From the IMG/VR virus record IMGVR_UViG_3300033159_000002, positions 1 to 50,004 of that record: a stretch of DNA of 50,004 nt; one strand, given 5' to 3'. Numbering within the stretch: position 1 is the first letter of the stretch; every line of letters begins with the position of its first letter. Below are positions 3,914-36,651 of the stretch, piece after piece. The position numbers and the translations under genes were made by a program. The notes beneath the pieces were generated by a model. The model was not told the DNA's origin, made no database searches, and saw nothing but the letters and a program-made list of their open reading frames with translations.

Positions 3914-4183
3914 CTAATAAATAAAAACACGTTCTCCTTCCTTTAGTTCGCGTAAATATCTCCTCGCCTTCTCCCTAGCTAATTCGTCCGTTGATATCCT
4001 TATGAGGAAAGCTAACCTAGCCTTTGCTAGGTCGTCGGTCATTTCGATAATGTTGCATTCATGGTCATACGTATAGCCCCTCCTAAGATCCCTCATTATC
4101 ATGTCTGGTATTTCCCAGTCATGAGTAATTAATATACCTTCTCTTCGATAATAGCAGCTATTCCTCCCTTTGTAAATGTTCAT
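3914..4183 (-). CDS. Hypothetical protein
   Basis: Preceded by the conserved leaderless promoter TTTATTTTTTAGCTTTTCTCCCTACTTTTTCTT-ATG. Confidence 0.7.
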   Translation of the reverse strand: MNIYKGRNSCYYRREGILITHDWEIPDMIMRDLRRGYTYDHECNIIEMTDDLAKARLAFLIRISTDELAREKARRYLRELKEGERVFIY

Positions 4184-4239: not shown

Positions 4240-4656
4240 TTAGAACATGTCTGTGGATCTCATCAAGTACCTTATGACGAATATCAATGCGACTATTATC
4301 AACACTACTACGAGGATCTGGAATATAGACCCTAAAGTTGGCGCTATCGGTGAGACGTAGTTGTAATTGGCAGGGATTTTAACAGCAGTGTTGTTGAAGA
4401 CGTTAAGGATGTAAAGGCCGACACCACTGACGATAGATACTGTTACTGCACCAACTACTAAAACTACGATGGCAATTATGATATACTTAAACTTGTCCTT
4501 GTAGTTCTCATCATCGTCGGCCATCATTATCGGTAACCTAGTACCCATGACTGCGCTACTTAGACTAATGAACATCGTCCTTATCGCCATTATTACGTTG
4601 AGCAGTAGATTTATTAATAATATTCTTGCTACTGGGTTTAGTTGAGTGGATCTCAT
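4240..4656 (-). CDS. Candidate major capsid protein (spindle-virus-type two-hydrophobic-helix hairpin with N-terminal pro-region)
   Basis: Two long hydrophobic helices separated by a loop with an NNT sequon; TATATTTTTAAA 23 nt upstream of ATG 4656; architecture resembles fusellovirus VP1-type proteins. Confidence 0.55.
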   Translation of the reverse strand: MRSTQLNPVARILLINLLLNVIMAIRTMFISLSSAVMGTRLPIMMADDDENYKDKFKYIIIAIVVLVVGAVTVSIVSGVGLYILNVFNNTAVKIPANYNYVSPIAPTLGSIFQILVVVLIIVALIFVIRYLMRSTDMF

Positions 4657-4704
4657 TGTAATAAAGGTCAACATAAAGGTTTAAAAATATACTAAAACGA
4701 TTAT

Positions 4705-6772
4705 ATACTTAGTGCAATTGTATTCTTGTTGAATAACATCCTTTGCTTATGTACAGTGAAATACTTATTGACTTTTTCCATTGCTTGTGTGCAATAACGC
4801 ATTTATCGAACGTATTGATTGCTTATGTGCATGACAGGCATTATTGAGATCTGTTCTTGCTTATGTGCACGAAACAGTTTATTAAGACACCTTCTTGCTC
4901 GTGTGCAATTACTAACTTATTTATTAAGATTTTTTGCTCATGTGCATTAATAAATTTATCAGGGTGCAATAGGCTTCTTGTTGAAAATCGCCTCTTGCTC
5001 ATGTACAGTTTCCTTAATTATTATTTTTGCTCATGTGCATTTTTAACCCTAGTGAATATATTTCTTGCTTGTGTGCACACCTTTTGTTATTAATGCTTTA
5101 TTTTGCTCATGTGCATTGCTACTTTTAGTGAAGAAATTTCTTGCTAATGTGCAATGTATTATTTATTGAAATCGTTGATTGCTTGTGTGCAATGACGGTA
5201 TTATTGAATGGAGTTGTTGCTTGTGTGCAGGTACGGTTTTATTGAAGATAATATTTGCTGGTGTGCAGGTAGCCCTTTACTGAATTGTTCATTTGCTGGT
5301 GTGCAATCGAATTGTTGTTGAATGTAGTTTTTGCTAGCGTGCAGAGGATAAATTATTGATTTCCTTGTTTGCTAATGTGCAAAGATTTCGTGATTGAATA
5401 GTAGCCTTGCTAGTGTGCATATGGGATCTTATTAAATGGTAGTATTGCTCATGTGCAATTATCCGTTTATTGAATATATTCGGTTGCTGGCGTGCAAAAA
5501 CATAATTATTGAGTGAATTTCTTGCTTATGTGCAGGTCTTCACTTATTGATATTTTATCTTGCTTGTGTGCAACCACGTGTTTATTGAAAAGATTTTTTG
5601 CTAGTGTGCAATTATTATATTTCGTGGGTTTATAGGCTGGTATATAGTCTTCTAGTTATTAATTTTTCGCTTCTGTGCATACTCCCTTTTATTGAGAAGT
5701 ATCCTTGCTAGTGTGCATATGTATAATTATTGAACTAGTTGATTGCTTATGTGCAAAATGCCGTTTATTGACTATCTCTCTTGCTTGTGTGCAACATCAC
5801 AATTATCGAATTGCTTTCTTGCTAGTGTGCATAATGCCCTTTATTGAATTGATCCATTGCTAGTGTGCAAATTATTGATTATTAAATATATCCCCTGCTT
5901 GGGTGCACGTATTTGTTCTTGTGCACCATTTCTTCTTATTGAGTAACACTTTTGCTTGTGTGCAGACTATATTTTATTTGGAGAGATTAATTGCTCGTGT
6001 GCAGTGTCCCACTTATTGAAATAGGATATTGCTCGTGTGCATATTACCTATTATTGAATTGAACACTTGCTGGTGTGCAATAGCTAAATTATTGAATCGC
6101 TTTATTGCTAGTGTGCATTTTAAATTTTATTGAACTTTTTTCTTGCTCATGTGCAATAGAGAGATTATTGGATCACCACTTTTGCTGCTGTGCAGATCTT
6201 GCTAGTGTGCAGTAGGGCGATTATTGAGCTGACAGATTGCTAGTGTTGTGCAAGAAAGACATTGTTGAATTGCTATATTGCTAGTGTGCAGTGCGGAGTT
6301 TATTGAATATTTTTCTTGCTAGTGTGCAGAATATACATTATTGACCATTTTTGTTGCTTATGTGCAGTCTACATATTATTGAGAGCTTTTCTTGCTGATG
6401 TGCAAAAATTGCTTTATTGAAATGATATCTTGCTTATATGCAAGATTTCAATTATTGAATGCCTTGTTTGCTTGTGTGCATCCAACTTTTTATTGACGAT
6501 ATTTGTTGCTTATGTGCACTGCTCATTTTATTGAAGTGATTTTTTGCTAGTGTGCAATTGCATAATTATTGATTTCCTTTCTTGCTGGTGTGTATCAGCC
6601 TAATTATTGAATCCTTAGATTGCTGGTGTGCAGAGAACCGCTTATTGACCATTTTTTTTTTTTTGCTTATGTGCATTTCGATCATTAGGGAAGTAAAGGC
6701 TTGCTAGTGTGCATCAGCGGGTTGTCCATGTGCAATTATCATTTTATCGAACTTATTCCTTACTAATATGCA
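4705..6772 (-). repeat. TIGR-like dual-spacer guide RNA array, ~55 units, 38-nt period
   Basis: Plus strand: TTGCTnnTGTGCA-N9-TTATTGA-N9 repeated, with nearly all N9 segments unique; co-oriented with and ~25 nt downstream of the Nop/IS110-like gene. Confidence 0.88.
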
Positions 6773-6797
6773 ATTACGCAATAAAATAATAAATAGT

Positions 6798-7829
6798 TTA
6801 CTGTATGACTTTCTTCTTCTTAAGCCACGTTATCACCTCGTTCTTATCAATCCCTAACTCCTCCACGACTTTCTCAAATTTTGCCTTATATTTGTCGCTC
6901 TTTATGTCAACGTAGTAGTCAGTTATTGGCGCCTCTATGAAGTCTTCGTGCTCCTTAAGTATTTTGTACTCCTTCCCTAGCACCACCTCATAGGCCTTAT
7001 GTAATGGCACCCCCTCACGATAATACAATGATATGGCGAAGAGCTGAGATATCAGTAAGGATATTGCTTTCCTAGTCGCCGTACGCTGTACTCTGAGCTT
7101 TGGCCAGTCAGGGTGCTTGGCTGCTACATCCTCCTTAAAACTCTTTATAATTTTTGAATAAACACCGCCCGCCATCATTAGGTTGTTGGCTAGGATTCCT
7201 AACAAGAACGTCTTCACCTCTCTGTTGTATGGAACGTTTTTGGCTGCAGTACCTATGAGCTTGGTTCCATCAACGGGACATAGCCATCCTTCCTTCGACG
7301 GGGTCGCAGGTTTACCGTTGCTGGACTTGCCTGCGTAATACCAGTAACCGCACTTCGGGCACTGGAACATAACCGCAAGTCCTGCATAGCTCCTGAACTT
7401 ATTAGCATTGTACCCGAATTGTGGCGGAAATGCATAAACTATGAGCCTTGCAGCATTAGCTGGTCCTATACCCCTAATAAATGCTAGGAAGTTCGTAAAT
7501 TCTGGGAATTGTGTTATGACACCAGCGAGGAGCCCCTCCACTGTCTCTTGTTGTTTTAGTAAGTCGTAAAAACGTTGAATAAGTTCATTGGACGGTGTTT
7601 CCTCGACAACTTGCACTGGCTCACCGCATAGTGGGCACCTGTCCCTTTTCTCGTCCTCCTTCAGTAGAACCGCGTGTTTATTCTTACAAATAGTATACCT
7701 CTTTAGGAATACCCAACCGCTTCCGTTTTTCTTCGCTCCTATTCTATTTCCTAGGGAAACACGCAATTTTACAACGTCATCCCTGAACCTTACTAGATCC
7801 TTCAAATAGACTAGGTTCTTTTCACTCAT
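6798..7829 (-). CDS. Tas-like (TasA-type) Nop/IS110-Tnp-domain RNA-binding protein with two Zn-ribbon insertions; no RuvC or HNH evident
   Basis: Coiled coil (LVRFRDDVVKLRVSLGNRI), IRGIGPANAARLI and NANKFRSYAGL motifs of the IS110 Transposase_20/Nop fold; CKNKH..CPLC and CPKC..CPVD insertions; RBS GGGGTGA before ATG 7829. Confidence 0.8.
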   Translation of the reverse strand: MSEKNLVYLKDLVRFRDDVVKLRVSLGNRIGAKKNGSGWVFLKRYTICKNKHAVLLKEDEKRDRCPLCGEPVQVVEETPSNELIQRFYDLLKQQETVEGLLAGVITQFPEFTNFLAFIRGIGPANAARLIVYAFPPQFGYNANKFRSYAGLAVMFQCPKCGYWYYAGKSSNGKPATPSKEGWLCPVDGTKLIGTAAKNVPYNREVKTFLLGILANNLMMAGGVYSKIIKSFKEDVAAKHPDWPKLRVQRTATRKAISLLISQLFAISLYYREGVPLHKAYEVVLGKEYKILKEHEDFIEAPITDYYVDIKSDKYKAKFEKVVEELGIDKNEVITWLKKKKVIQ

Positions 7830-8001
7830 GTTTTTCCTCACCCCTCCTAAAAGTTATAGTCTTTTTCTCCAAATCAAGATACGGAATGAATTCCTTTAAA
7901 AAAACAGCTACCTTGGCTGGAACTACGATATAATATACCTGCACTTCTTTCCCATTTTGTTTCTTCACGGTTTTTACGTACCATTTTAACTCGAGTTCCA
8001 T
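7822..8001 (-). CDS. Small AbrB/SpoVT-like DNA-binding protein, first gene of the Tas operon
   Basis: YYIVVPAKVA swapped-hairpin-like motif; BRE/TATA GAAAACTTTTTAAA ~22 nt upstream of ATG 8001; overlaps the Tas start. Confidence 0.5.
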   Translation of the reverse strand: MELELKWYVKTVKKQNGKEVQVYYIVVPAKVAVFLKEFIPYLDLEKKTITFRRGEEKHE

Positions 8002-8036
8002 AATATATAATTCAAACACTTGTTTAAAAAGTTTTC

Positions 8037-8456
8037 TCACCTATTTGCCAATCGTAATAATAACTTATGTAACAACATTACTATTATTAACGACAGCATG
8101 GCAGCGATCAAAAACGACATAACATAGTATACCGATATATCGTTTTCTGACGGGACAACGACTACGTTATAATAACCTGGTTGTACGGTTGTGGTGTTCA
8201 CATACACGCTCCCGTTTACTTCCAACACTCCCCCTCCCTCTATGCTCAGCGTCGAATAAGGGCCTGAAGGGTAATAATAGTACTTCCCAGACGGTGTAAA
8301 GTTATACATGCCAGGCTGGAAGTACATGTTAAAAGTGTAGTAAGTCCTGGCTATAAGCGTAGTTAGCGCTGAGGCTATGGCGAGAGTTGAGAAAACGAAG
8401 ACGATCGCGTAAAACACGATCTCCTTCATCTTGTGGCACCCCGCCAGTAAGGACAA
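8037..8456 (-). CDS. Membrane protein (N- and C-terminal TM, sequon-rich beta region)
   Basis: Two TM segments; NFT, NGS and NTT sequons. Confidence 0.7.
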   Translation of the reverse strand: MSLLAGCHKMKEIVFYAIVFVFSTLAIASALTTLIARTYYTFNMYFQPGMYNFTPSGKYYYYPSGPYSTLSIEGGGVLEVNGSVYVNTTTVQPGYYNVVVVPSENDISVYYVMSFLIAAMLSLIIVMLLHKLLLRLANR

Positions 8457-8462
8457 GGTAGT

Positions 8463-9071
8463 CTACTTCACTACAGCAAAAGTAAACGAGGAGGACTCTA
8501 TATTTTCCCCTAATATTACAATATCCCTTTCCTCCCCAAGAGCATACACTCTTATCACGTTTTCATCGAAGACCACCTTTTTGACCTCCCTCGACGGGGG
8601 GAAGGGTAAAGCGTAAAAGAACGGCATAGTCCCCGCGTTCACCAGCAATAATGCGTATAGGTAGTCTTCGTACGGAGTCCTATTGTCTCGGTGGAGGAGC
8701 ATTGAAAGGTCATTATTGCTGTCGAAGTAGTCGGGGATTTTGATTTTGATCTTCGGCACTTCGATGTCCTTCTTCTTTTTAATGTCCTGTAAGTAAACGA
8801 ACGGCCTTGTTGTCTCTTCAACGACATACGTGTATTTGAAGTATTCATCTTCAATTTCGACAACGTTATCGGTAACCCTTGAGGACAGTGGGGTGGAGAA
8901 TGTTGCCCTAAAACGGAATGATGGGGAATCGTAAAACTCCCGGATCGCAGACAAAGCAAAAAATGTATCAATTGGTCTGTACTCTGTTTTTTTCAGTAGT
9001 TTGAGGTAATCTGAGACCGTATTTACTTTTACGTTATACATAACTTCCAAGTAGGACAGAATAGTACCCAT
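8463..9071 (-). CDS. Hypothetical protein
   Basis: 202-aa ORF with a TTTTTCTTAT-type promoter. Confidence 0.7.
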   Translation of the reverse strand: MGTILSYLEVMYNVKVNTVSDYLKLLKKTEYRPIDTFFALSAIREFYDSPSFRFRATFSTPLSSRVTDNVVEIEDEYFKYTYVVEETTRPFVYLQDIKKKKDIEVPKIKIKIPDYFDSNNDLSMLLHRDNRTPYEDYLYALLLVNAGTMPFFYALPFPPSREVKKVVFDENVIRVYALGEERDIVILGENIESSSFTFAVVK

Positions 9072-9140
9072 AAATTTAGGACAGATTGTGATAAGAAAAA
9101 CCTAGAGCTAACTTTTCCTCACCCTTCATGGCGAGATTTG

Positions 9141-9569
9141 TCACTTAATATATTTTAATACGACACGCTCATCATGCAGCAACACTACCTGTGTGTGTGT
9201 GTGGGTTTTGAGATGATATAACGCGTGCGGAAACTTTGCATGCATCATTCTCTTCATAAAGACCATTATTAAAACGTTCTGTTGGTATAATAAGTGAAAC
9301 CAACTAGTCGTTGTGTCAAATGGTAAATATAATAGAATTTCACTATGAAGGATTTTATGACTCGTTATAGCTCTTAATATGAAGGGTTTTTTGTTTGAGA
9401 ATGGCGGGTTGCAGTAAGAGTGGTCTGGCCATAGTTTTACTGCTGCATTAAATTTTGTTTTATCTAGGCAAACGTCTGTGAACTTTAGTTCTTGTGTTAT
9501 AATATCATAAAGGGTTTTAGGCGTTGGTTTATTGTCATGAACCCCTTTCGGTGGAAATTTAATTGTCAT
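9141..9569 (-). CDS. Phage Dam-like DNA N6-adenine methyltransferase
   Basis: DNKPTP, FTDVC, W..SYCNPPF catalytic motif, LYLPFDTTTSWF (PF05869-like pattern). Confidence 0.75.
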   Translation of the reverse strand: MTIKFPPKGVHDNKPTPKTLYDIITQELKFTDVCLDKTKFNAAVKLWPDHSYCNPPFSNKKPFILRAITSHKILHSEILLYLPFDTTTSWFHLLYQQNVLIMVFMKRMMHAKFPHALYHLKTHTHTQVVLLHDERVVLKYIK

Positions 9570-9799
9570 TGGGACACCTCAGTACCTCTTGTTTTTAAAT
9601 CTTCTTTTACTGTTTTTCTAAAAATAGCTAACATATATGTTTCATAATATCTAAAAATATTTAAATACTCTAATGGTAATAACGGCGTTATATATGCTAT
9701 TAATTCATAGTCGTTTAGCTCTAGAACTTCTTCACCATATCGTTTTGCAAATTCATGAGCTATTTCGATTATTTTTTGTTCAACTTCTTGTCTTGTCAT
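9566..9799 (-). CDS. Small helical protein, paralog of the C-terminal domain of 2402..2851
   Basis: LELNDYELIAYITPLLPLEYLNIFRYY versus LEMNDNELTEYLVSLLPLQDLDLFRRY. Confidence 0.75.
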   Translation of the reverse strand: MTRQEVEQKIIEIAHEFAKRYGEEVLELNDYELIAYITPLLPLEYLNIFRYYETYMLAIFRKTVKEDLKTRGTEVSQ

Positions 9800-9873
9800 T
9801 TTAATTCACGTTTTCGAAATATTACAAATTTAAAAATTTTCTACTTTTTTCCCGTTTATTTCGTTAATTAATA

Positions 9874-10884
9874 TCATATGATCACCTCAAGCTTTCTTAA
9901 CAAGGTTGGTTCTCCTAGCTCATGGCCGCACCTCGGACATTTTCCGCCGAACATTGACTTTATTTCTGATGGAGCTCTTACACCATAATAGTCCTGCCCT
10001 ACCTTTTCAAACCTATACAACTCATATCCGCAGCTTTTACATACGTACCTTATAGGCCCTAAAACCTCTACTATTTCCTTATATCTGTGCCTTATGATCG
10101 TTTCAGAAATATTCAGTGCTTTTGCTACTTCTTTTTGTGATTTCCTATTGTCCATTAGTATAGCCACCACATACACCGCAGCAGCGCTTAACGTTAAGTA
10201 ATTGCCGCTAATTAGCCCATTCTTATACATGTAGTCTATCAGCTCTGCAGCTTTTGTCCCTATAATCGGCGGTAGGTTTAATTTGTCAACTATTTTAGGG
10301 ATATATTTGGTCGGTATTATTGTAGGCCTGAATTCTGGGATAACTGTTTTTATCCTCTTCGTGGCCTGCCAGAACTCGCTTATGGAAACATCAAACTTTG
10401 CCTTAAATTCCTGCAAAGATATAGGCACATTATTCATTTGGCACGAATAGTATAATACTGCGGCAATTAGCGCATTTAAACTTATCCTCCTTTCTAACCC
10501 ATTCTCAATTAGCCTTCTTAGTATAAGTGCGGCAGTTTCTTTCACATGTTTTGGTAGATCTAGTTTTGATGCTTCTCTGTTAAGCCTTGAAAGGTATGTC
10601 ACTAATTTTTTCTCCCTAGTAGATGAGATCCTACTCCAGTTATGTAACCTTTGCATTTTCATTAGCTTTATCCTATCTTTTACCTTAGCATATCTTCCTA
10701 TCGTGGTTGAAAGGCCTTCATCGTGGATTTTTAGGGTCAGTGGGGATCCAGTCCTTTCCCGCTCTAAGACGTCCTCATGATTATATACTCTCCATTCTGG
10801 TCCTAGGTCTACAACTCTGTCCTCTATAACTTCCCCTGTCTCTGTGTCAACGTACTCTCCTCTTTCAGGGTCAAAGATTATCAT
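9874..10884 (-). CDS. tfb: Transcription initiation factor B (TFB/TFIIB) homologue with C-terminal Zn-ribbon fusion
   Basis: [38 protein letters not shown], two cyclin repeats, [25 protein letters not shown], then CKSC...CPRC. Confidence 0.92.
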
Positions 10885-32256: not shown

Positions 32257-35200
32257 GTGTTCTTCAGACCACATTTTACATATATTGAAGCAGCTACAGC
32301 AGAACAAACACAGGCTAGGGAAGCTGCTGCAAACGAAGAATGGAGGAAAAGGCTCCTCCTAAGACCTTCTGAGATTAAAATACAACACAAATCGATAACG
32401 TCTATACCTAGAGAAGTAATAATAAAGCTTACCCACCTTTCAGCACATGAGCAAGAACCAATCGTTAACCCGCCAGCACATATAACCCTAGTACGTATCA
32501 TAAGGCCTCGTGAGAGTGAGCAGGAACCAAACCCGCCAGCACATGAAAGACAAAGGCGTATCTATTTCTTTGGAGGATCTTCCCCTAATTTACCTACCGA
32601 TCTCCAGAAGCCTAGGCCGTTTATAACATATGTTCCTAATAGTTTTTGGGATCAAATTACCCGTAAGCAAGAAACAAACTCATCTGCTGTACACCACACA
32701 GAAGGGCTTAGTCCATGGGCACGTAGTCATATAGCAATGGCGCCTGATGAAAGAACTCCAACACCTAAACTAACCCCGTTCGACCAACTTCATATGGCAG
32801 CATCTGGTATCGAAGGGTCCCCAACACTGAATTCTGGTCCTGTAATACCACACATTTATAACCCTCCACCAATAATGCCAGTCAATTCCCCACCATCACA
32901 GCCACCAGCTCACAACAATGCTAGTCCTCCACCACCGCCTCCATCCAATAACACACCTTCGCAATCCAGTAACCCATTCGGCTTCTTCGGTTCTTTATTT
33001 GGTTCAGTCGTTAACGCTGTGACTAACGCAGTAAGTGGAGGTAATAATTCGGGAGGAGGTCAATCAAATAACCCGCTCACGTCGTTCCTCAGCTCTGCTG
33101 CAAATGCTGTGTCTAGCATGGCGAATGCTATTGGAAACGCAATAAGTCATGGCCAAATCGTTGCTAATGCGGCAACTTCTGGAGGCCAACCCAGTAACCC
33201 ATTCGGTGCGATAGGTTCGTTCTTTAGTTCAGTTGGTAATGATATTACCAATGCTGCATCCACATTTGTTAGTGATGTAACTAACGCAGTACAGAGTGCT
33301 GGGAGCGCAATAACTGGAGCATTGTCAACTGCTGGAAATGCAATAAAGAACGCTGCGTCCACAATTGGTAGCGACATAACTAACGCAGCAAAGGATGTTG
33401 GAAACGCAGTAACTAGCGCATTATCAACTGCTGGGAAAGCAGTAACTGGTGCACTGACGGATGTCGGGAACACAGTAATTGGAGCACTTTCAGCTGCGAA
33501 TAACGCAATACAGAACGCGTATAACTCCGTTTACGGAAACAAAATCCAGCAAGAGAAGCAGCAATTAGAGAACCAGCTCAAACAATTACAGCAGCAAGCG
33601 CAGCAAGAGTTAAACCAAATTCAACAGGAGAAACAGCAAGTACAAAACCAGTTGCAGCAAGTGCAGCAGCAAGCCCAACAAGAGTTAAACCAAATTCAAC
33701 AGGAGAAACAGCAAGTACAAAACCAGTTGCAGCAAGTGCAGCAGCAAGCCCAACAAGAGTTAAGTCAGCTTAACCAAGCCCAACAACAAATACAAAGTCA
33801 GTTGCAACAAGCCCAACAACAGGGTCAGCAGGAATTAATGCAAATAAGCCAACAGGAACAACAATTACAAGCTGAGTTACAACAAATACAACAATATGAA
33901 GCACAAGCCGAGCAGATGCTACAACAGAATCCTAACAATCCACAATTACAGAGCTACTTACAACAATTGCAGCAACAGCAACAACAAATACTGCAAAACT
34001 TAGCTCAGCTTAACCAGGCACAGCAGGAAGTACAGACGTACTTACAGCAAACTCAGCTTCAAGCACAGCAGGAGTTAATGCAAATTAACCAAGCCCAACA
34101 ACAAATACAAAGTCAGTTACAATTAGCTGAACAGCAAGCCCAACAAGACTTAGCTCAGCTTAACCAAGCCCAACAACAAGTACAGACGTACTTACAACAA
34201 GTGCAACAACAAGCCCAACAGGATCTGAACAAGCTTAACCAAGCCCAACAACAAATACAAAGTCAGTTGCAACAAGCCCAACAACAAATACAACAAGAGT
34301 TAGCGCAACTCAACAAACAACAACAAGGGGGTAACCCACTCCAACAGTTCTTTACTGACGTAGCTGATGTTTCAGCATTAATAGGCTATTACGCTACTGA
34401 AGGATTGGGCGGTGTCGGAGAGGAGTTGGCTCACCTTGTACAGGGTAAGGGTCTTGAGAATTTCAGCCAAGCGATTGCACAGTTCAATAAGGCAGGAGGG
34501 CAAAACATCGCTAAGATTGTAGGTGATGTCACGGAAGTCGCGTTACCTGCGATAATTACTGCGGTCGTTGCACCTGAACTACTACCCGCCGAGCTCATCG
34601 GCGAAGCATCATCGGTAGGTATCGGCGAAGTCGCTACAAAGCTCACCACAGGTCACTGGCAATCACTACAGCAAGTGTTACAGGAGGCAAATGAGGGTGG
34701 TGTGCTAGGCGCTATCGGCGAAGCTGGCGGTCTAGCATTAGAGTCTGGCCTAGCGAAGGGGGCAGGCGCATTAACGAAGTTGTTGACAGGTAGCGAAGAC
34801 TTGGCGTCGCAAGTGGCACACCTAACACCAGTGTGGAGAGCGGCAGGCGGTGCGTTAACTAACGTGGCACTACAGTTACCTTTCTCGCAGAACCCTGAGC
34901 AGCTGGCAATCGCTGGAATCATAGGCGGTTTGGCAGGTGGCTTAGGCCCTGGTATAGCGGGCAAATTGATGAGCAAGATAGACGAGATTAGAGGGACTGG
35001 TGGTGTAGCAGAACTAGAAACGCTCACATCACCCCTCACTGGCGAGACCACAGAAGCGTGGAAGATAACGCTACCCAGCGGTGACACGGTTTACTTAGTA
35101 CCAAAAACTACGTTCGGAGAAGGAGATATTAGCGACTTCGTAGACGCATACACAGGTAAAACTACTTTAGCGACTCACGTGACTCCATCGCGTGATTTCC

Positions 35201-36651
35201 TTAATGAGGTTGCTAATGGAGAAGCGCTTGTAAAGGTAGCAGGCGAACCGCCTAAAGATGAATGGGCGTTCCGAGAGTGGGGACATTTAAGGAATTTATA
35301 CCTCTCGCCTGGCGAAAGTGAGGACGTGGGAGTAGCGTTAACTGCATACTCAGGACTAAAGGACACAGAGCCTGGCATACCTGAGTTCAGCATAGGTCGT
35401 TCAAGTGTGAAAAACGTACTCTACAGATTCCTTCACCCCTTTGATAGAGGTGGTATAATAGGTATAAAGACTGATGCTGTTGATATTGAACCTCCTGAGG
35501 AGTTAGTCGATTATATTTTGGCTAAGAAAGCAGAGTATTTGGCGAACGTAGAATCTAACTGGTTGAAAAAATTCGCGAATAACTTCGCCATGAAGGAGTT
35601 ACTTAACGATCCAATATATGGCCCCATGTATAAAGAATACATAAACGAGCTGCTGACCTATAGTGCTGAGCACGGGGAACCTGTAATCGACCCTGAGGGG
35701 TTATTAGGCCTCACTCACGAGAGGCAGATAGAACTCGCTCCTGGTGCTAAGTTGAGAGGAACTGGAGAAGTGTATAATATATGGGTGAGACAGACACCAG
35801 AACTATTTAGAAACCTACCTGGGCCTCTGCGTGATATCCTCTCCGACTGGTCGAGATTCAAGTATGTCGGAGCAGAAATCATCCCTGGCGAGCCTCTTAA
35901 CTTGTTTGAGGACACAGAGAGTAATGAGACAGGAGGAGAGAGAATACCAGAATTGGGTGGTGAAGAGGGAGGAGAGAGAATACCAGAATTGGGTGGTGAA
36001 GAGGGAGGAGAGAGAATACCTAAGTTGCAAGGTGAGGAAGGAGGTGAAGAGGGAGGAGAGAGAATACTTAACGAGGGTGGGGAATGGAGGCTACCAGAAC
36101 CGATTTTACGGGAACCGTTCTGGATGGAACGTGAACCTCAACTAGAGAGTTCAGAGTTACCAACATATACTTCACCTCCACGGGACATTTATTCGTCCCC
36201 CTCACCAATTAGCAACCCACCACCTCCAATAATATCATCCCCATCGGTACCCACCATTAACCCACCATCTTCAACGTTGCCACCGATACCTCCTATTAAT
36301 TCACCGCCTTCGCCATCGCCAATAACATCACCGCCACCTTCACCCACCATTTCACCGCCTCCTCCAATCAACTCACCGCCCTCACCGCCATCCATCAGTT
36401 CACCACCGCCAATAAATTCTCCTCCACCACCCCCTATTATTAATATACCACCATCTGAGTACATACAGATAGAATCACAATCATCACCACCACCGCCAAT
36501 ATTCTCTTCGTCAACTGTTACCGAAAACGAATCGCCAATGCCGATGGGCCCACCACCAATATTGCCAGCGATAATGCCAGGTGGTTTTGGAGGAGGCGGA
36601 AACAACAACATGGAAATTAGCGGGATGGCAGGCGAGGTGATCTACCTGTGA
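32257..36651 (+). CDS. Giant multidomain protein (1464 aa): Pro-rich, amphipathic 11-mer repeats, Gln-rich coiled coil, hydrophobic G/A helices, globular (ART-like?) domain, Pro-rich tail
   Basis: Sequence composition; 75-bp tandem repeat near 33604-33763; 36-bp repeats near 35932-36066. Confidence 0.9.
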   Translation: MFFRPHFTYIEAATAEQTQAREAAANEEWRKRLLLRPSEIKIQHKSITSIPREVIIKLTHLSAHEQEPIVNPPAHITLVRIIRPRESEQEPNPPAHERQRRIYFFGGSSPNLPTDLQKPRPFITYVPNSFWDQITRKQETNSSAVHHTEGLSPWARSHIAMAPDERTPTPKLTPFDQLHMAASGIEGSPTLNSGPVIPHIYNPPPIMPVNSPPSQPPAHNNASPPPPPPSNNTPSQSSNPFGFFGSLFGSVVNAVTNAVSGGNNSGGGQSNNPLTSFLSSAANAVSSMANAIGNAISHGQIVANAATSGGQPSNPFGAIGSFFSSVGNDITNAASTFVSDVTNAVQSAGSAITGALSTAGNAIKNAASTIGSDITNAAKDVGNAVTSALSTAGKAVTGALTDVGNTVIGALSAANNAIQNAYNSVYGNKIQQEKQQLENQLKQLQQQAQQELNQIQQEKQQVQNQLQQVQQQAQQELNQIQQEKQQVQNQLQQVQQQAQQELSQLNQAQQQIQSQLQQAQQQGQQELMQISQQEQQLQAELQQIQQYEAQAEQMLQQNPNNPQLQSYLQQLQQQQQQILQNLAQLNQAQQEVQTYLQQTQLQAQQELMQINQAQQQIQSQLQLAEQQAQQDLAQLNQAQQQVQTYLQQVQQQAQQDLNKLNQAQQQIQSQLQQAQQQIQQELAQLNKQQQGGNPLQQFFTDVADVSALIGYYATEGLGGVGEELAHLVQGKGLENFSQAIAQFNKAGGQNIAKIVGDVTEVALPAIITAVVAPELLPAELIGEASSVGIGEVATKLTTGHWQSLQQVLQEANEGGVLGAIGEAGGLALESGLAKGAGALTKLLTGSEDLASQVAHLTPVWRAAGGALTNVALQLPFSQNPEQLAIAGIIGGLAGGLGPGIAGKLMSKIDEIRGTGGVAELETLTSPLTGETTEAWKITLPSGDTVYLVPKTTFGEGDISDFVDAYTGKTTLATHVTPSRDFLNEVANGEALVKVAGEPPKDEWAFREWGHLRNLYLSPGESEDVGVALTAYSGLKDTEPGIPEFSIGRSSVKNVLYRFLHPFDRGGIIGIKTDAVDIEPPEELVDYILAKKAEYLANVESNWLKKFANNFAMKELLNDPIYGPMYKEYINELLTYSAEHGEPVIDPEGLLGLTHERQIELAPGAKLRGTGEVYNIWVRQTPELFRNLPGPLRDILSDWSRFKYVGAEIIPGEPLNLFEDTESNETGGERIPELGGEEGGERIPELGGEEGGERIPKLQGEEGGEEGGERILNEGGEWRLPEPILREPFWMEREPQLESSELPTYTSPPRDIYSSPSPISNPPPPIISSPSVPTINPPSSTLPPIPPINSPPSPSPITSPPPSPTISPPPPINSPPSPPSISSPPPINSPPPPPIINIPPSEYIQIESQSSPPPPIFSSSTVTENESPMPMGPPPILPAIMPGGFGGGGNNNMEISGMAGEVIYL

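Follow-up and report, generated by a model that had tools for sequence, protein, structure and literature searches.

The 50,004 nucleotides (nt) of virus DNA analysed here, which correspond to positions 1 to 50,004 of the IMG/VR record IMGVR_UViG_3300033159_000002 (the window, throughout), very probably encode a TIGR-Tas system with dual repeats and a nuclease-free Tas protein (TasA), which is an accessory module of a virus similar to Sulfolobales virus YNP1 (SYV1). Established directly are the Tas fold of the protein and its lack of a nuclease domain, the TIGR anatomy of an array downstream of its gene on the same strand, and the linkage of this gene to these repeats across unrelated virus backbones. 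By analogy with the characterised systems, its function is probably RNA-guided DNA binding without cleavage. An initial annotation, made from the letters alone, had proposed a TIGR-Tas-like locus with a nuclease-less Tas protein, and this proposal is borne out by a profile match to TasR, a fold shared with TasR and TasH, and the anatomy of the array.

The array runs along the minus strand from 6772 to 4712 with a period of 38 nt, each unit reading TGCACAnnAGCAA-N9-TCAATAA-N9. Thus, an edge repeat of 13 nt (TGCACAynAGCAA) is followed by spacer A (9 nt), a loop repeat of 7 nt (TCAATAA) and spacer B (9 nt). The exact 13-mer edge TGCACANNAGCAA is present in 42 copies, found on the minus strand only and confined to 4781-6713, while 0.03 copies are expected by chance (100 dinucleotide-preserving shuffles). 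With mismatches allowed, about 54 edge-initiated segments can be recognised between 6772 and 4712, a span of 2,061 nt that equals about 54 x 38. The early estimate of ~55 units of two repeats and two spacers therefore holds, and the plus-strand example unit given with it, near 5522, is exact to the letter. A strict parse, requiring an edge of 13 nt, spacers of 8-10 nt and a loop TCAATAA with at most one mismatch, yields 41 fully canonical units, with 37 spaced exactly 38 nt. The 11 specified positions of the edge repeat carry 1.8-2.0 bits of information, its two 'nn' positions 1.06 and 0.13 bits, and the positions of the loop repeat 1.4-2.0 bits; the spacer positions mostly carry 0.02-0.5 bits, with a maximum of 0.73 at position 4 of spacer A. 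The array was also correctly placed 25 nt past the end of the tas gene, whose stop codon TAA lies at 6798-6800, with the first degenerate unit at 6772. Across the 182 distinct units with 9/9 spacers from all arrays, positions 2-4 of spacer A are rich in A (53-61%), the spacer often starting with GAAA, and a bias of this type is absent from spacer B. This A-richness might stem from constraints on RNA binding or from a biased origin of the units.

The gene beside the array, tasA, encodes a protein of 343 amino acids (aa) in which the GIGPANAA and KFRSYAGL motifs reported in the initial annotation are indeed found. Searches with the single sequence gave noise: Pfam returned a sub-threshold match to Transposase_20 (PF02371; E=0.067, 14 bits against a cutoff of 21.3) plus zinc-ribbon matches, and phmmer against the PDB returned zinc-ribbon noise. 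A profile was therefore required. We built it from 25 metagenomic homologues, which are 60-84% identical and have 90 invariant columns, including all the zinc ligands and a Tyr/His pair. In the PDB, this profile matched TasR (9MTY; E=1e-4) across the GIGP helix-hairpin-helix and the helices that follow. This was the sole sequence-profile match there to a related protein, and the paper describing 9MTY confirms that it is the cryo-EM structure of TIGR-TasR. The fold tells the same story. With the AlphaFold (AF2) monomer model as a query (pLDDT 90.2, pTM 0.84), the best 12 Foldseek matches in the PDB are TasR, five TasH entries and then the IS621/ISCro4 recombinases, all with a probability of 1.00; TasR, TasH and the IS110-type recombinases are the only significant or near-significant fold matches. 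In BFVD, the best match is a 343-aa protein, 77% identical and with a TM of 0.99, followed by phage 'IS110-family' proteins; judged from its length and identity, it is probably ATSV_B343 of Acidianus tailed spindle virus (ATSV). Pfam finds neither a RuvC nor an HNH domain, and in the model the protein opens directly with a coiled-coil helix. The absence of a nuclease domain makes this a TasA-type protein. Its wider family is large, since a profile search of 1.84 billion representative proteins recovered 308 relatives of 200-490 aa (E<=0.001); Transposase_20 of Pfam was recognised in three of the ten that were scanned, in one case above the gathering score.

The model adds detail to this assignment. 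Two long helices (residues 3-29 and 81-105) are placed like the coiled coil of Tas and Nop5 in the monomer model, and a zinc module sits at their tip, where it may possibly contact the guide/target duplex. This module and a second one, inserted in the Nop core, are both all-beta and lack the helix of the beta-beta-alpha-metal fold. The position of the second insertion is also occupied by a zinc ribbon in most of the ten distant homologues scanned, and G120 and G122 of the GIGP motif are invariant even when distant homologues are included. Near the C-terminus, Y280, Y288 and H294 are invariant in the 25 family members. In 27 distant homologues, a Tyr in a PY or AY context and a downstream His recur in most sequences, with neither column reaching 90%. 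Dual-repeat Tas proteins process pre-tigRNA with a Tyr/His dyad of a C-terminal loop, Y289 and H296 in SpTasH (PMC13421893; preprint 10.64898/2026.09.09.750476), and the Tyr/His residues of the present family may be their equivalents.

The closest records to the window are SYV1 (KP282679) and ATSV (KU645528), and their comparison is informative regarding the mobility of the module. SYV1 and the window have a common virus backbone. The backbone of ATSV is unrelated, but ATSV carries a tas homologue (ATSV_B343, 77% identical, 343 aa) and, directly downstream of it, an array with identical repeats and the same 38-nt period. This array is annotated as a repeat_region at 9232-10146 (915 bp); it holds 24 units instead of the ~54 of the window, starts one base past the tas stop rather than 25 nt past it, and ends in a terminal unit of the same type, while almost all its spacers are different. 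In the records of both ATSV and SYV1 the tas homologue is annotated as 'hypothetical'. Thus, tas and identical repeats are found together in ATSV-type and SYV1-type viruses, whose flanking genes are not shared. Conversely, Sulfolobales virus YNP2 (SYV2; KP282680, our locus L026) has homologues of the genes on either side of the window's module (8463-9071, 8037-8456, 4240-4674 and 3914-4183), but neither tas nor an array. Two unrelated backbones with the module, together with SYV2 without it, identify an accessory unit that moves between virus lineages. In the family as a whole, arrays of 30-68 units are common, and 116 arrays supplied 889 distinct spacer pairs. Two peptide patterns typical of close relatives, run against 185,579 species-representative genomes, found no relative and no provirus.

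A closer comparison is provided by contig 3300026885_000046 (L036), which shares about 12 syntenic array units with the window, with insertions and deletions of units as well as point changes. Over 6798-9118, the tas proteins of the two are only 76% identical and the products of two small upstream open reading frames (ORFs) 73-80% identical, whereas the backbone proteins are 93-98% identical and the TFIIB gene is 92% identical at the DNA level. A diverged tas amid a near-identical backbone suggests allele exchange within the module. Indeed, the pair looks like the outcome of a recombination patch that replaced the tas allele and retained part of the array.

The ends of the array point in a similar direction. 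The window contains two copies of a terminal-type unit, at 5007-4955 and at 4755-4717. Its spacer A has 10 nt, its loop reads TCAACAA, its spacer B follows the pattern GAAnnCnAT, and it has an internal stem, GCAA.GGC / GCC.UUGC in the copy at 5007-4955. This unit has been kept between ATSV-type and SYV1-type viruses, and it closes the ATSV array (at about 10100-10146 of that record). Because the terminal-type unit is present twice, the array of the window looks like two blocks (Table 1), which suggests that it was assembled from two arrays or prolonged beyond an old end. The second block finishes with a truncated edge, TGCAC (4716-4712), followed by T-tracts; the ATSV array ends in TGCACAC. 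A 3'-truncated edge repeat at the end of the array is typical of TIGR arrays (PMC12045711). Truncated or partial units are also present at 6211, 5925 and 5039, and a degenerate segment of 69 nt interrupts the first block; that this segment acts as an internal promoter is a matter of speculation. One unit is stretched to 43 nt by 13 consecutive A (6662-6650, minus strand), likely a product of slippage.

All the neighbouring genes of tasA and the array are on the minus strand. Runs of at least five T act as termination signals in archaea. Read in the minus sense, the array of the window has two such runs against 13 runs of at least five A, and that of ATSV has none against four. This depletion is as would be expected of an archaeal transcript that avoids early termination. 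Upstream of tasA lies a 59-aa ORF (orf59), probably co-transcribed with tas, and a TATA-like element that may be the promoter of orf59, tasA and the array. The upstream gene had been called AbrB-like, a claim that found no support: although the model of orf59 (pLDDT 80) has a beta-beta-alpha-beta-beta order compatible with AbrB, there is no significant Pfam or Foldseek match. Moreover, orf59 is present in SYV1-type loci and in SYV2, which has no tas, and is absent beside tas in ATSV-type loci, so it is a gene of the virus backbone and not a partner of Tas. With no fold or family match and no tas linkage outside SYV1-type viruses, the AbrB identity was dropped.

Table 1. Features of the tasA-array locus in the window
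Feature	Position	Strand	Remarks
TATA-like TTTTTAAA	8023..8030	-	some 25 nt before the ATG at 8001; read by eye
59-aa ORF (orf59)	7822..8001	-	8-nt overlap with the tas start
tasA	6798..7829	-	343 aa, Nop-type RNA-binding fold, no nuclease domain; the ATG at 7829 is common to homologues
Beta-rich zinc module	7590..7742	-	codons 30-80; invariant C48, H52, C65, C68; DSSP of the model
GIGPANAA helix-hairpin-helix, Nop/Transposase_20 core	7449..7472	-	aligned to IKGIGPVVAGGLI of TasR 9MTY
Second zinc-ribbon insertion in the Nop core	7245..7373	-	codons 153-195; invariant C157, C160, C184
Candidate Tyr/His processing dyad	6948..6992	-	codons 280-294; Y280 or Y288, plus H294
Leader and degenerate first units	6714..6797	-	AT-rich 25 nt after the stop; TGCATATTAGTAA at 6772-6760; partial unit at 6734
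TIGR array block 1	4955..6713	-	about 46 units, closed by the terminal-type unit 5007-4955
Degenerate segment, 69 nt	5611..5679	-	interrupts the array; AT-rich TATA-like stretches
TIGR array block 2	4712..4946	-	five regular units, terminal-type unit 4755-4717, 3'-truncated edge TGCAC 4716-4712
T-tracts past the array	4676..4700	-	TTTT 4697-4694, TTTTT 4687-4683; possible archaeal terminator and/or TATA box of the next gene

The logic of the repeats gives an idea of how the guides could be made. Both repeats start with U and end with YAA (CAA in the edge, UAA in the loop), and the last base of each spacer is biased towards pyrimidines (67% at A9 and 82% at B9, with G at B9 in only 5 of 182 units). 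This bias permits a closing stem of 3-4 bp around the 6-nt loop ACAynA of the edge, (U)UGC / GCAA, and a 2-bp stem with a CAAU tetraloop in the loop repeat (UU-CAAU-AA). As both repeats are invariant within the family, there is no covariation to read. tigRNAs have been described as pseudo-symmetric and bound by a symmetric dimer, and the repeat ends and the bias of the spacer ends appear to match the pseudo-symmetry expected for such a dimer, with a partial fit of the motifs (edge UG...CAA only).

In the mechanism that we propose, the array would be transcribed on the minus strand, either as an extension of the tasA transcript or from a start in the AT-rich leader. A TasA dimer would then assemble on the precursor, one protomer holding the closed edge (U)UGC...GCAA and the other the loop repeat UU-CAAU-AA, and the conserved C-terminal Tyr/His would cut in the edge loop ACAynA to release 38-nt tigRNAs, about 50 guides in all. 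Each tigRNA would carry two guides, both of 8-9 nt, one for either strand of an 18-bp DNA site, and the complex, having no nuclease, would block its target, for instance by transcriptional repression, without cutting it. TasA is known to bind processed tigRNAs and to act as an RNA-guided repressor (PMC12045711; preprint 10.64898/2026.09.09.750476), and it is in this manner that bacterial TasA proteins repress transcription.

We searched for targets on the basis of the published rule, by which spacers A and B pair with opposite DNA strands over an 18-bp site, gaps of 1-2 bp being tolerated (PMC12045711); the 8-nt 3' overhangs that were reported agree with the order A followed by the reverse complement of B, A+rc(B). 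Both opposite-strand and both same-strand orders were tried with gaps of 0-2 and then with any spacing up to 40-60 nt, in the DNA of ATSV, SYV1, SYV2, the IMG/VR loci and the metagenome loci, and spacers re-paired at random served as controls. Within the window, 18-mers in the four spacer arrangements with up to 3 mismatches revealed no self-targets above re-paired controls. When 832 of the 889 pairs were compared with 1.2 Mb of related viral DNA, 2 adjacent exact pairs were found against 0.74 in the controls; at least one such pair arose in 45 of 100 shuffles. A set of 193 pairs against up to ~0.7 Mb of loci, overlapping copies included, gave no excess either. Thus, the excess of paired-spacer matches over controls, which the initial annotation had named as one of its checks, is not found within related viral DNA (1.2 Mb), and targets are not detectable in this virus or its relatives. 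One spacer pair that is shared across backbones was additionally compared with genome and viral contigs, where it gave scattered matches at chance level in unrelated organisms, none of them Sulfolobales among the matches listed.

Two exact matches deserve a description. A unit of L013 and L030 (A=ACAAGGAAG, B=GTTATCCTC) matches L020:9786-9803 in 18 of 18 positions, in the same-strand order B+A, a geometry not described for TIGR. The matched virus co-occurs with the carrier in one hot-spring sample series, and the site lies in the sense strand of its gene for an 89-aa protein; the allele of the carrier itself has 4 mismatches to the unit. The version of this unit in the window (~5381-5344) has 2 outer mismatches to the L020 site and 5 to the window's own gene (3914-4183, minus strand). 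Since 45 of 100 shuffles contain an adjacent exact pair, this lone same-strand match is compatible with chance. The other match concerns a unit of L170 and L201 (A=TATGAAGAT, B=TTTCCCTTC), which finds an exact 18/18 site in the canonical A+rc(B) order, without a gap, at L150:9431-9448, in the coding region of another virus contig; the site is also present in L030. Given the purine-rich character of coding sequence, this match is within chance expectation. It is tempting to speculate that TIGR-TasA is a mobile weapon or regulator that passes between virus lineages, with very large repertoires (30-68 guides per genome) against co-infecting viruses or host genes, much as the initial annotation had imagined for the guides, and that these two matches are real protospacers. 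We regard this extended scenario as unlikely. If it were true, natural targets of TIGR would have been seen here for the first time, and a second geometry of targeting would be hinted at.

Several observations weigh against the assignment of the locus to a TIGR-Tas system. Regarding targets, the two spacers of a pair co-occur within 40 nt in the 1.2 Mb of related viral DNA only 6 times, compared with 8.2 for re-paired spacers (832 of 889 pairs). In terms of fold, the expected kinship to Tas and IS110 proteins was recovered, but that to Nop5 was not: the Pfam Nop model has no match, and Nop5 structures are missing from the best 50 Foldseek matches (to E=7). The unit of 38 nt with repeats of 13 and 7 nt departs from the canonical 36 nt, the repeat lengths lying slightly outside the reported 8-12 nt. 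The loop repeat begins with UC rather than UG or CG, and the published box C/D definitions fit loosely. Finally, by our tally of the units shared with the close relative, changes are about as frequent in loop repeats as in spacers, which leaves room for relaxed constraint in some arrays.

This last point, the target search that found none in related viral DNA, and the partial or degenerate units at 6772-6714, 6211, 5925, 5679-5611 and 5039 would all suit a decaying relic in which tasA and/or many units are non-functional and persist by drift. However, tasA is intact and its 25 homologues preserve their 90 invariant columns, zinc ligands and Tyr/His pair among them; 42 of the ~54 edge repeats are perfect, and identical repeats are maintained in more than 100 arrays from many samples. 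Decay is, in our opinion, very unlikely. Somewhat different is the idea that the same ribonucleoprotein exists but reads single-stranded RNA or single-stranded DNA, with both spacers on one strand, as a box C/D small ribonucleoprotein (sRNP) does, and not duplex DNA. The unit is laid out like a C/D sRNA (box C-guide-D'-C'-guide-D), C/D sRNPs are abundant in the Sulfolobales that the virus infects, and the exact match of the L013/L030 unit to L020, with 4 mismatches to the own allele, has precisely this geometry. Yet this match is single, in a setting where almost half of the re-paired shuffles produce an adjacent exact pair, and the same-strand geometry was seen in no other unit searched. Moreover, characterised TasR is inactive on RNA and its spacers pair with opposite DNA strands (PMC12045711), while our protein has no N-terminal domain for fibrillarin as in Nop5 and the repeats have no K-turn box C/D sequences. 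We therefore give single-strand recognition little credence.

It could also be argued that no guide RNAs are made at all and that the array serves as DNA by offering repeated binding sites to a protein, in the manner of iterons, of a partition site resembling a centromere or of a packaging signal, since long arrays of short repeats in viruses and plasmids are often origins or partition sites. Such arrays are unlike this one, which alternates two repeats with two hypervariable 9-nt segments (889 pairs in 116 arrays), is strictly linked across unrelated backbones to a protein with a Tas RNA-binding fold, and shows a strand asymmetry of T-runs; in addition, homologous TIGR arrays are transcribed and processed (PMC12045711). 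This makes a role of the array as binding sites very improbable, and the iteron version was rejected because of the array anatomy and the tas linkage. A CRISPR array, which would alternate one repeat of 25-40 nt with spacers of about 30-40 nt and usually come with cas genes, was likewise rejected, given repeats of 13 and 7 nt, spacers of 9 nt and no cas gene among the neighbours examined. ATSV has a second repeat region (L027:11703-11992), annotated as a 'possible viral CRISPR locus', with a repeat of ~25 nt that reads roughly GTTGAAATAAGGAAGAACTGAAA at a spacing of 58-95 nt; the window has no copy of it.

Among known systems, the TIGR-TasA locus of the window resembles in organisation that of FpTasA of Flavonifractor plautii (PMC12045711), likewise a solo Nop-type Tas without nuclease, with the array beside tas and a truncated edge end. 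It differs from FpTasA and other dual-repeat TIGR-TasA systems in the lengths of unit and repeats given above, in its motifs (U.../...YAA instead of UG.../...CCA), in its number of units (~54 rather than the usual 5-15), in the two zinc-ribbon insertions of the protein and in its origin from an archaeal virus of acidic hot springs. The best fold matches, TaTasR (9MTY) and SpTasH (9W03, 9W04), have in common with our protein the coiled coil, the Nop core and the GIGP motif, and the candidate Tyr/His processing dyad resembles that of SpTasH. Identity to them is 12-15% and the TM-score over the query is 0.43-0.46, low because of the insertions; unlike them, our protein has no RuvC or HNH domain and is thus not expected to cleave. 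IS110/IS621 proteins (8WT6, 9T56) have a Transposase_20/Nop-like core in common with it (weak PF02371 match, Foldseek ranks 8-12), but their DEDD/RuvC-like N-terminal domain and their transposon ends are missing here, and a multi-unit array stands in place of a single bridge RNA. An IS110-family transposase was rejected on these grounds: no N-terminal catalytic domain, a sub-threshold Transposase_20 match, and an array instead of transposon ends. Archaeal box C/D sRNPs (Nop5, L7Ae and fibrillarin with a C/D sRNA), for which a relationship has been proposed (PMC12045711), would have in common with it a two-guide RNA with C/D-like end motifs on a coiled-coil dimer, and the host lineage of the virus is rich in C/D sRNAs, but the fibrillarin-binding N-terminal domain and the RUGAUGA/CUGA K-turn boxes are absent here. 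A Rfam scan of the array returned nothing relevant and no C/D family match at E<=1. With no Nop5 N-terminal domain and no K-turn boxes, the identity of the locus as a box C/D sRNP (Nop5) was ruled out.

The window encodes other features of interest. At 9874-10884 on the minus strand lies the gene of a TFIIB homologue, recognised by Pfam through both TFIIB (E=1.5e-25) and the TFIIB zinc ribbon, and SYV1 and SYV2 have this gene as well. The minus-strand gene at 9141-9569 specifies a small N6-adenine DNA methyltransferase of the Dam type with an NPPF motif (PF05869, E=1e-9). On the plus strand, an ORF of 1,464 aa (32257-36651) is without a Pfam match. Its repeats, at 33253-34327 and 35932-36020, comprise a Q-rich 75-nt tandem repeated about 9 times and a 36-nt repeat that is perfect over 2.5 copies, and its product is probably a coiled-coil structural protein.

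The kind of system described here is already known. The paper that discovered TIGR cites the ATSV array as TIGR-like and names archaeal viruses as TIGR carriers (PMC12045711), and the array of this family in ATSV is annotated in GenBank; with the ATSV array already in the literature, the locus adds little as a discovery. We found no further paper that links this virus family to TIGR, and the accessible part of the supplement text of Faure et al. has no mention of the locus, ATSV or the sample identifiers. What is new is the set of 38-nt units with 13/7-nt repeats, the two zinc modules, the long arrays (up to ~68 units) and the movement between backbones. The natural targets and the role of the recently found TIGR-Tas systems are still being sought, and this virus family represents a rich natural data set for that purpose. 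Because it combines long arrays, many related hot-spring genomes, ATSV, which can be cultivated in Acidianus, and the contrast between SYV1 and SYV2 in the presence and absence of the module, it is a good place to seek natural targets and to learn how the units of these arrays are gained and lost.

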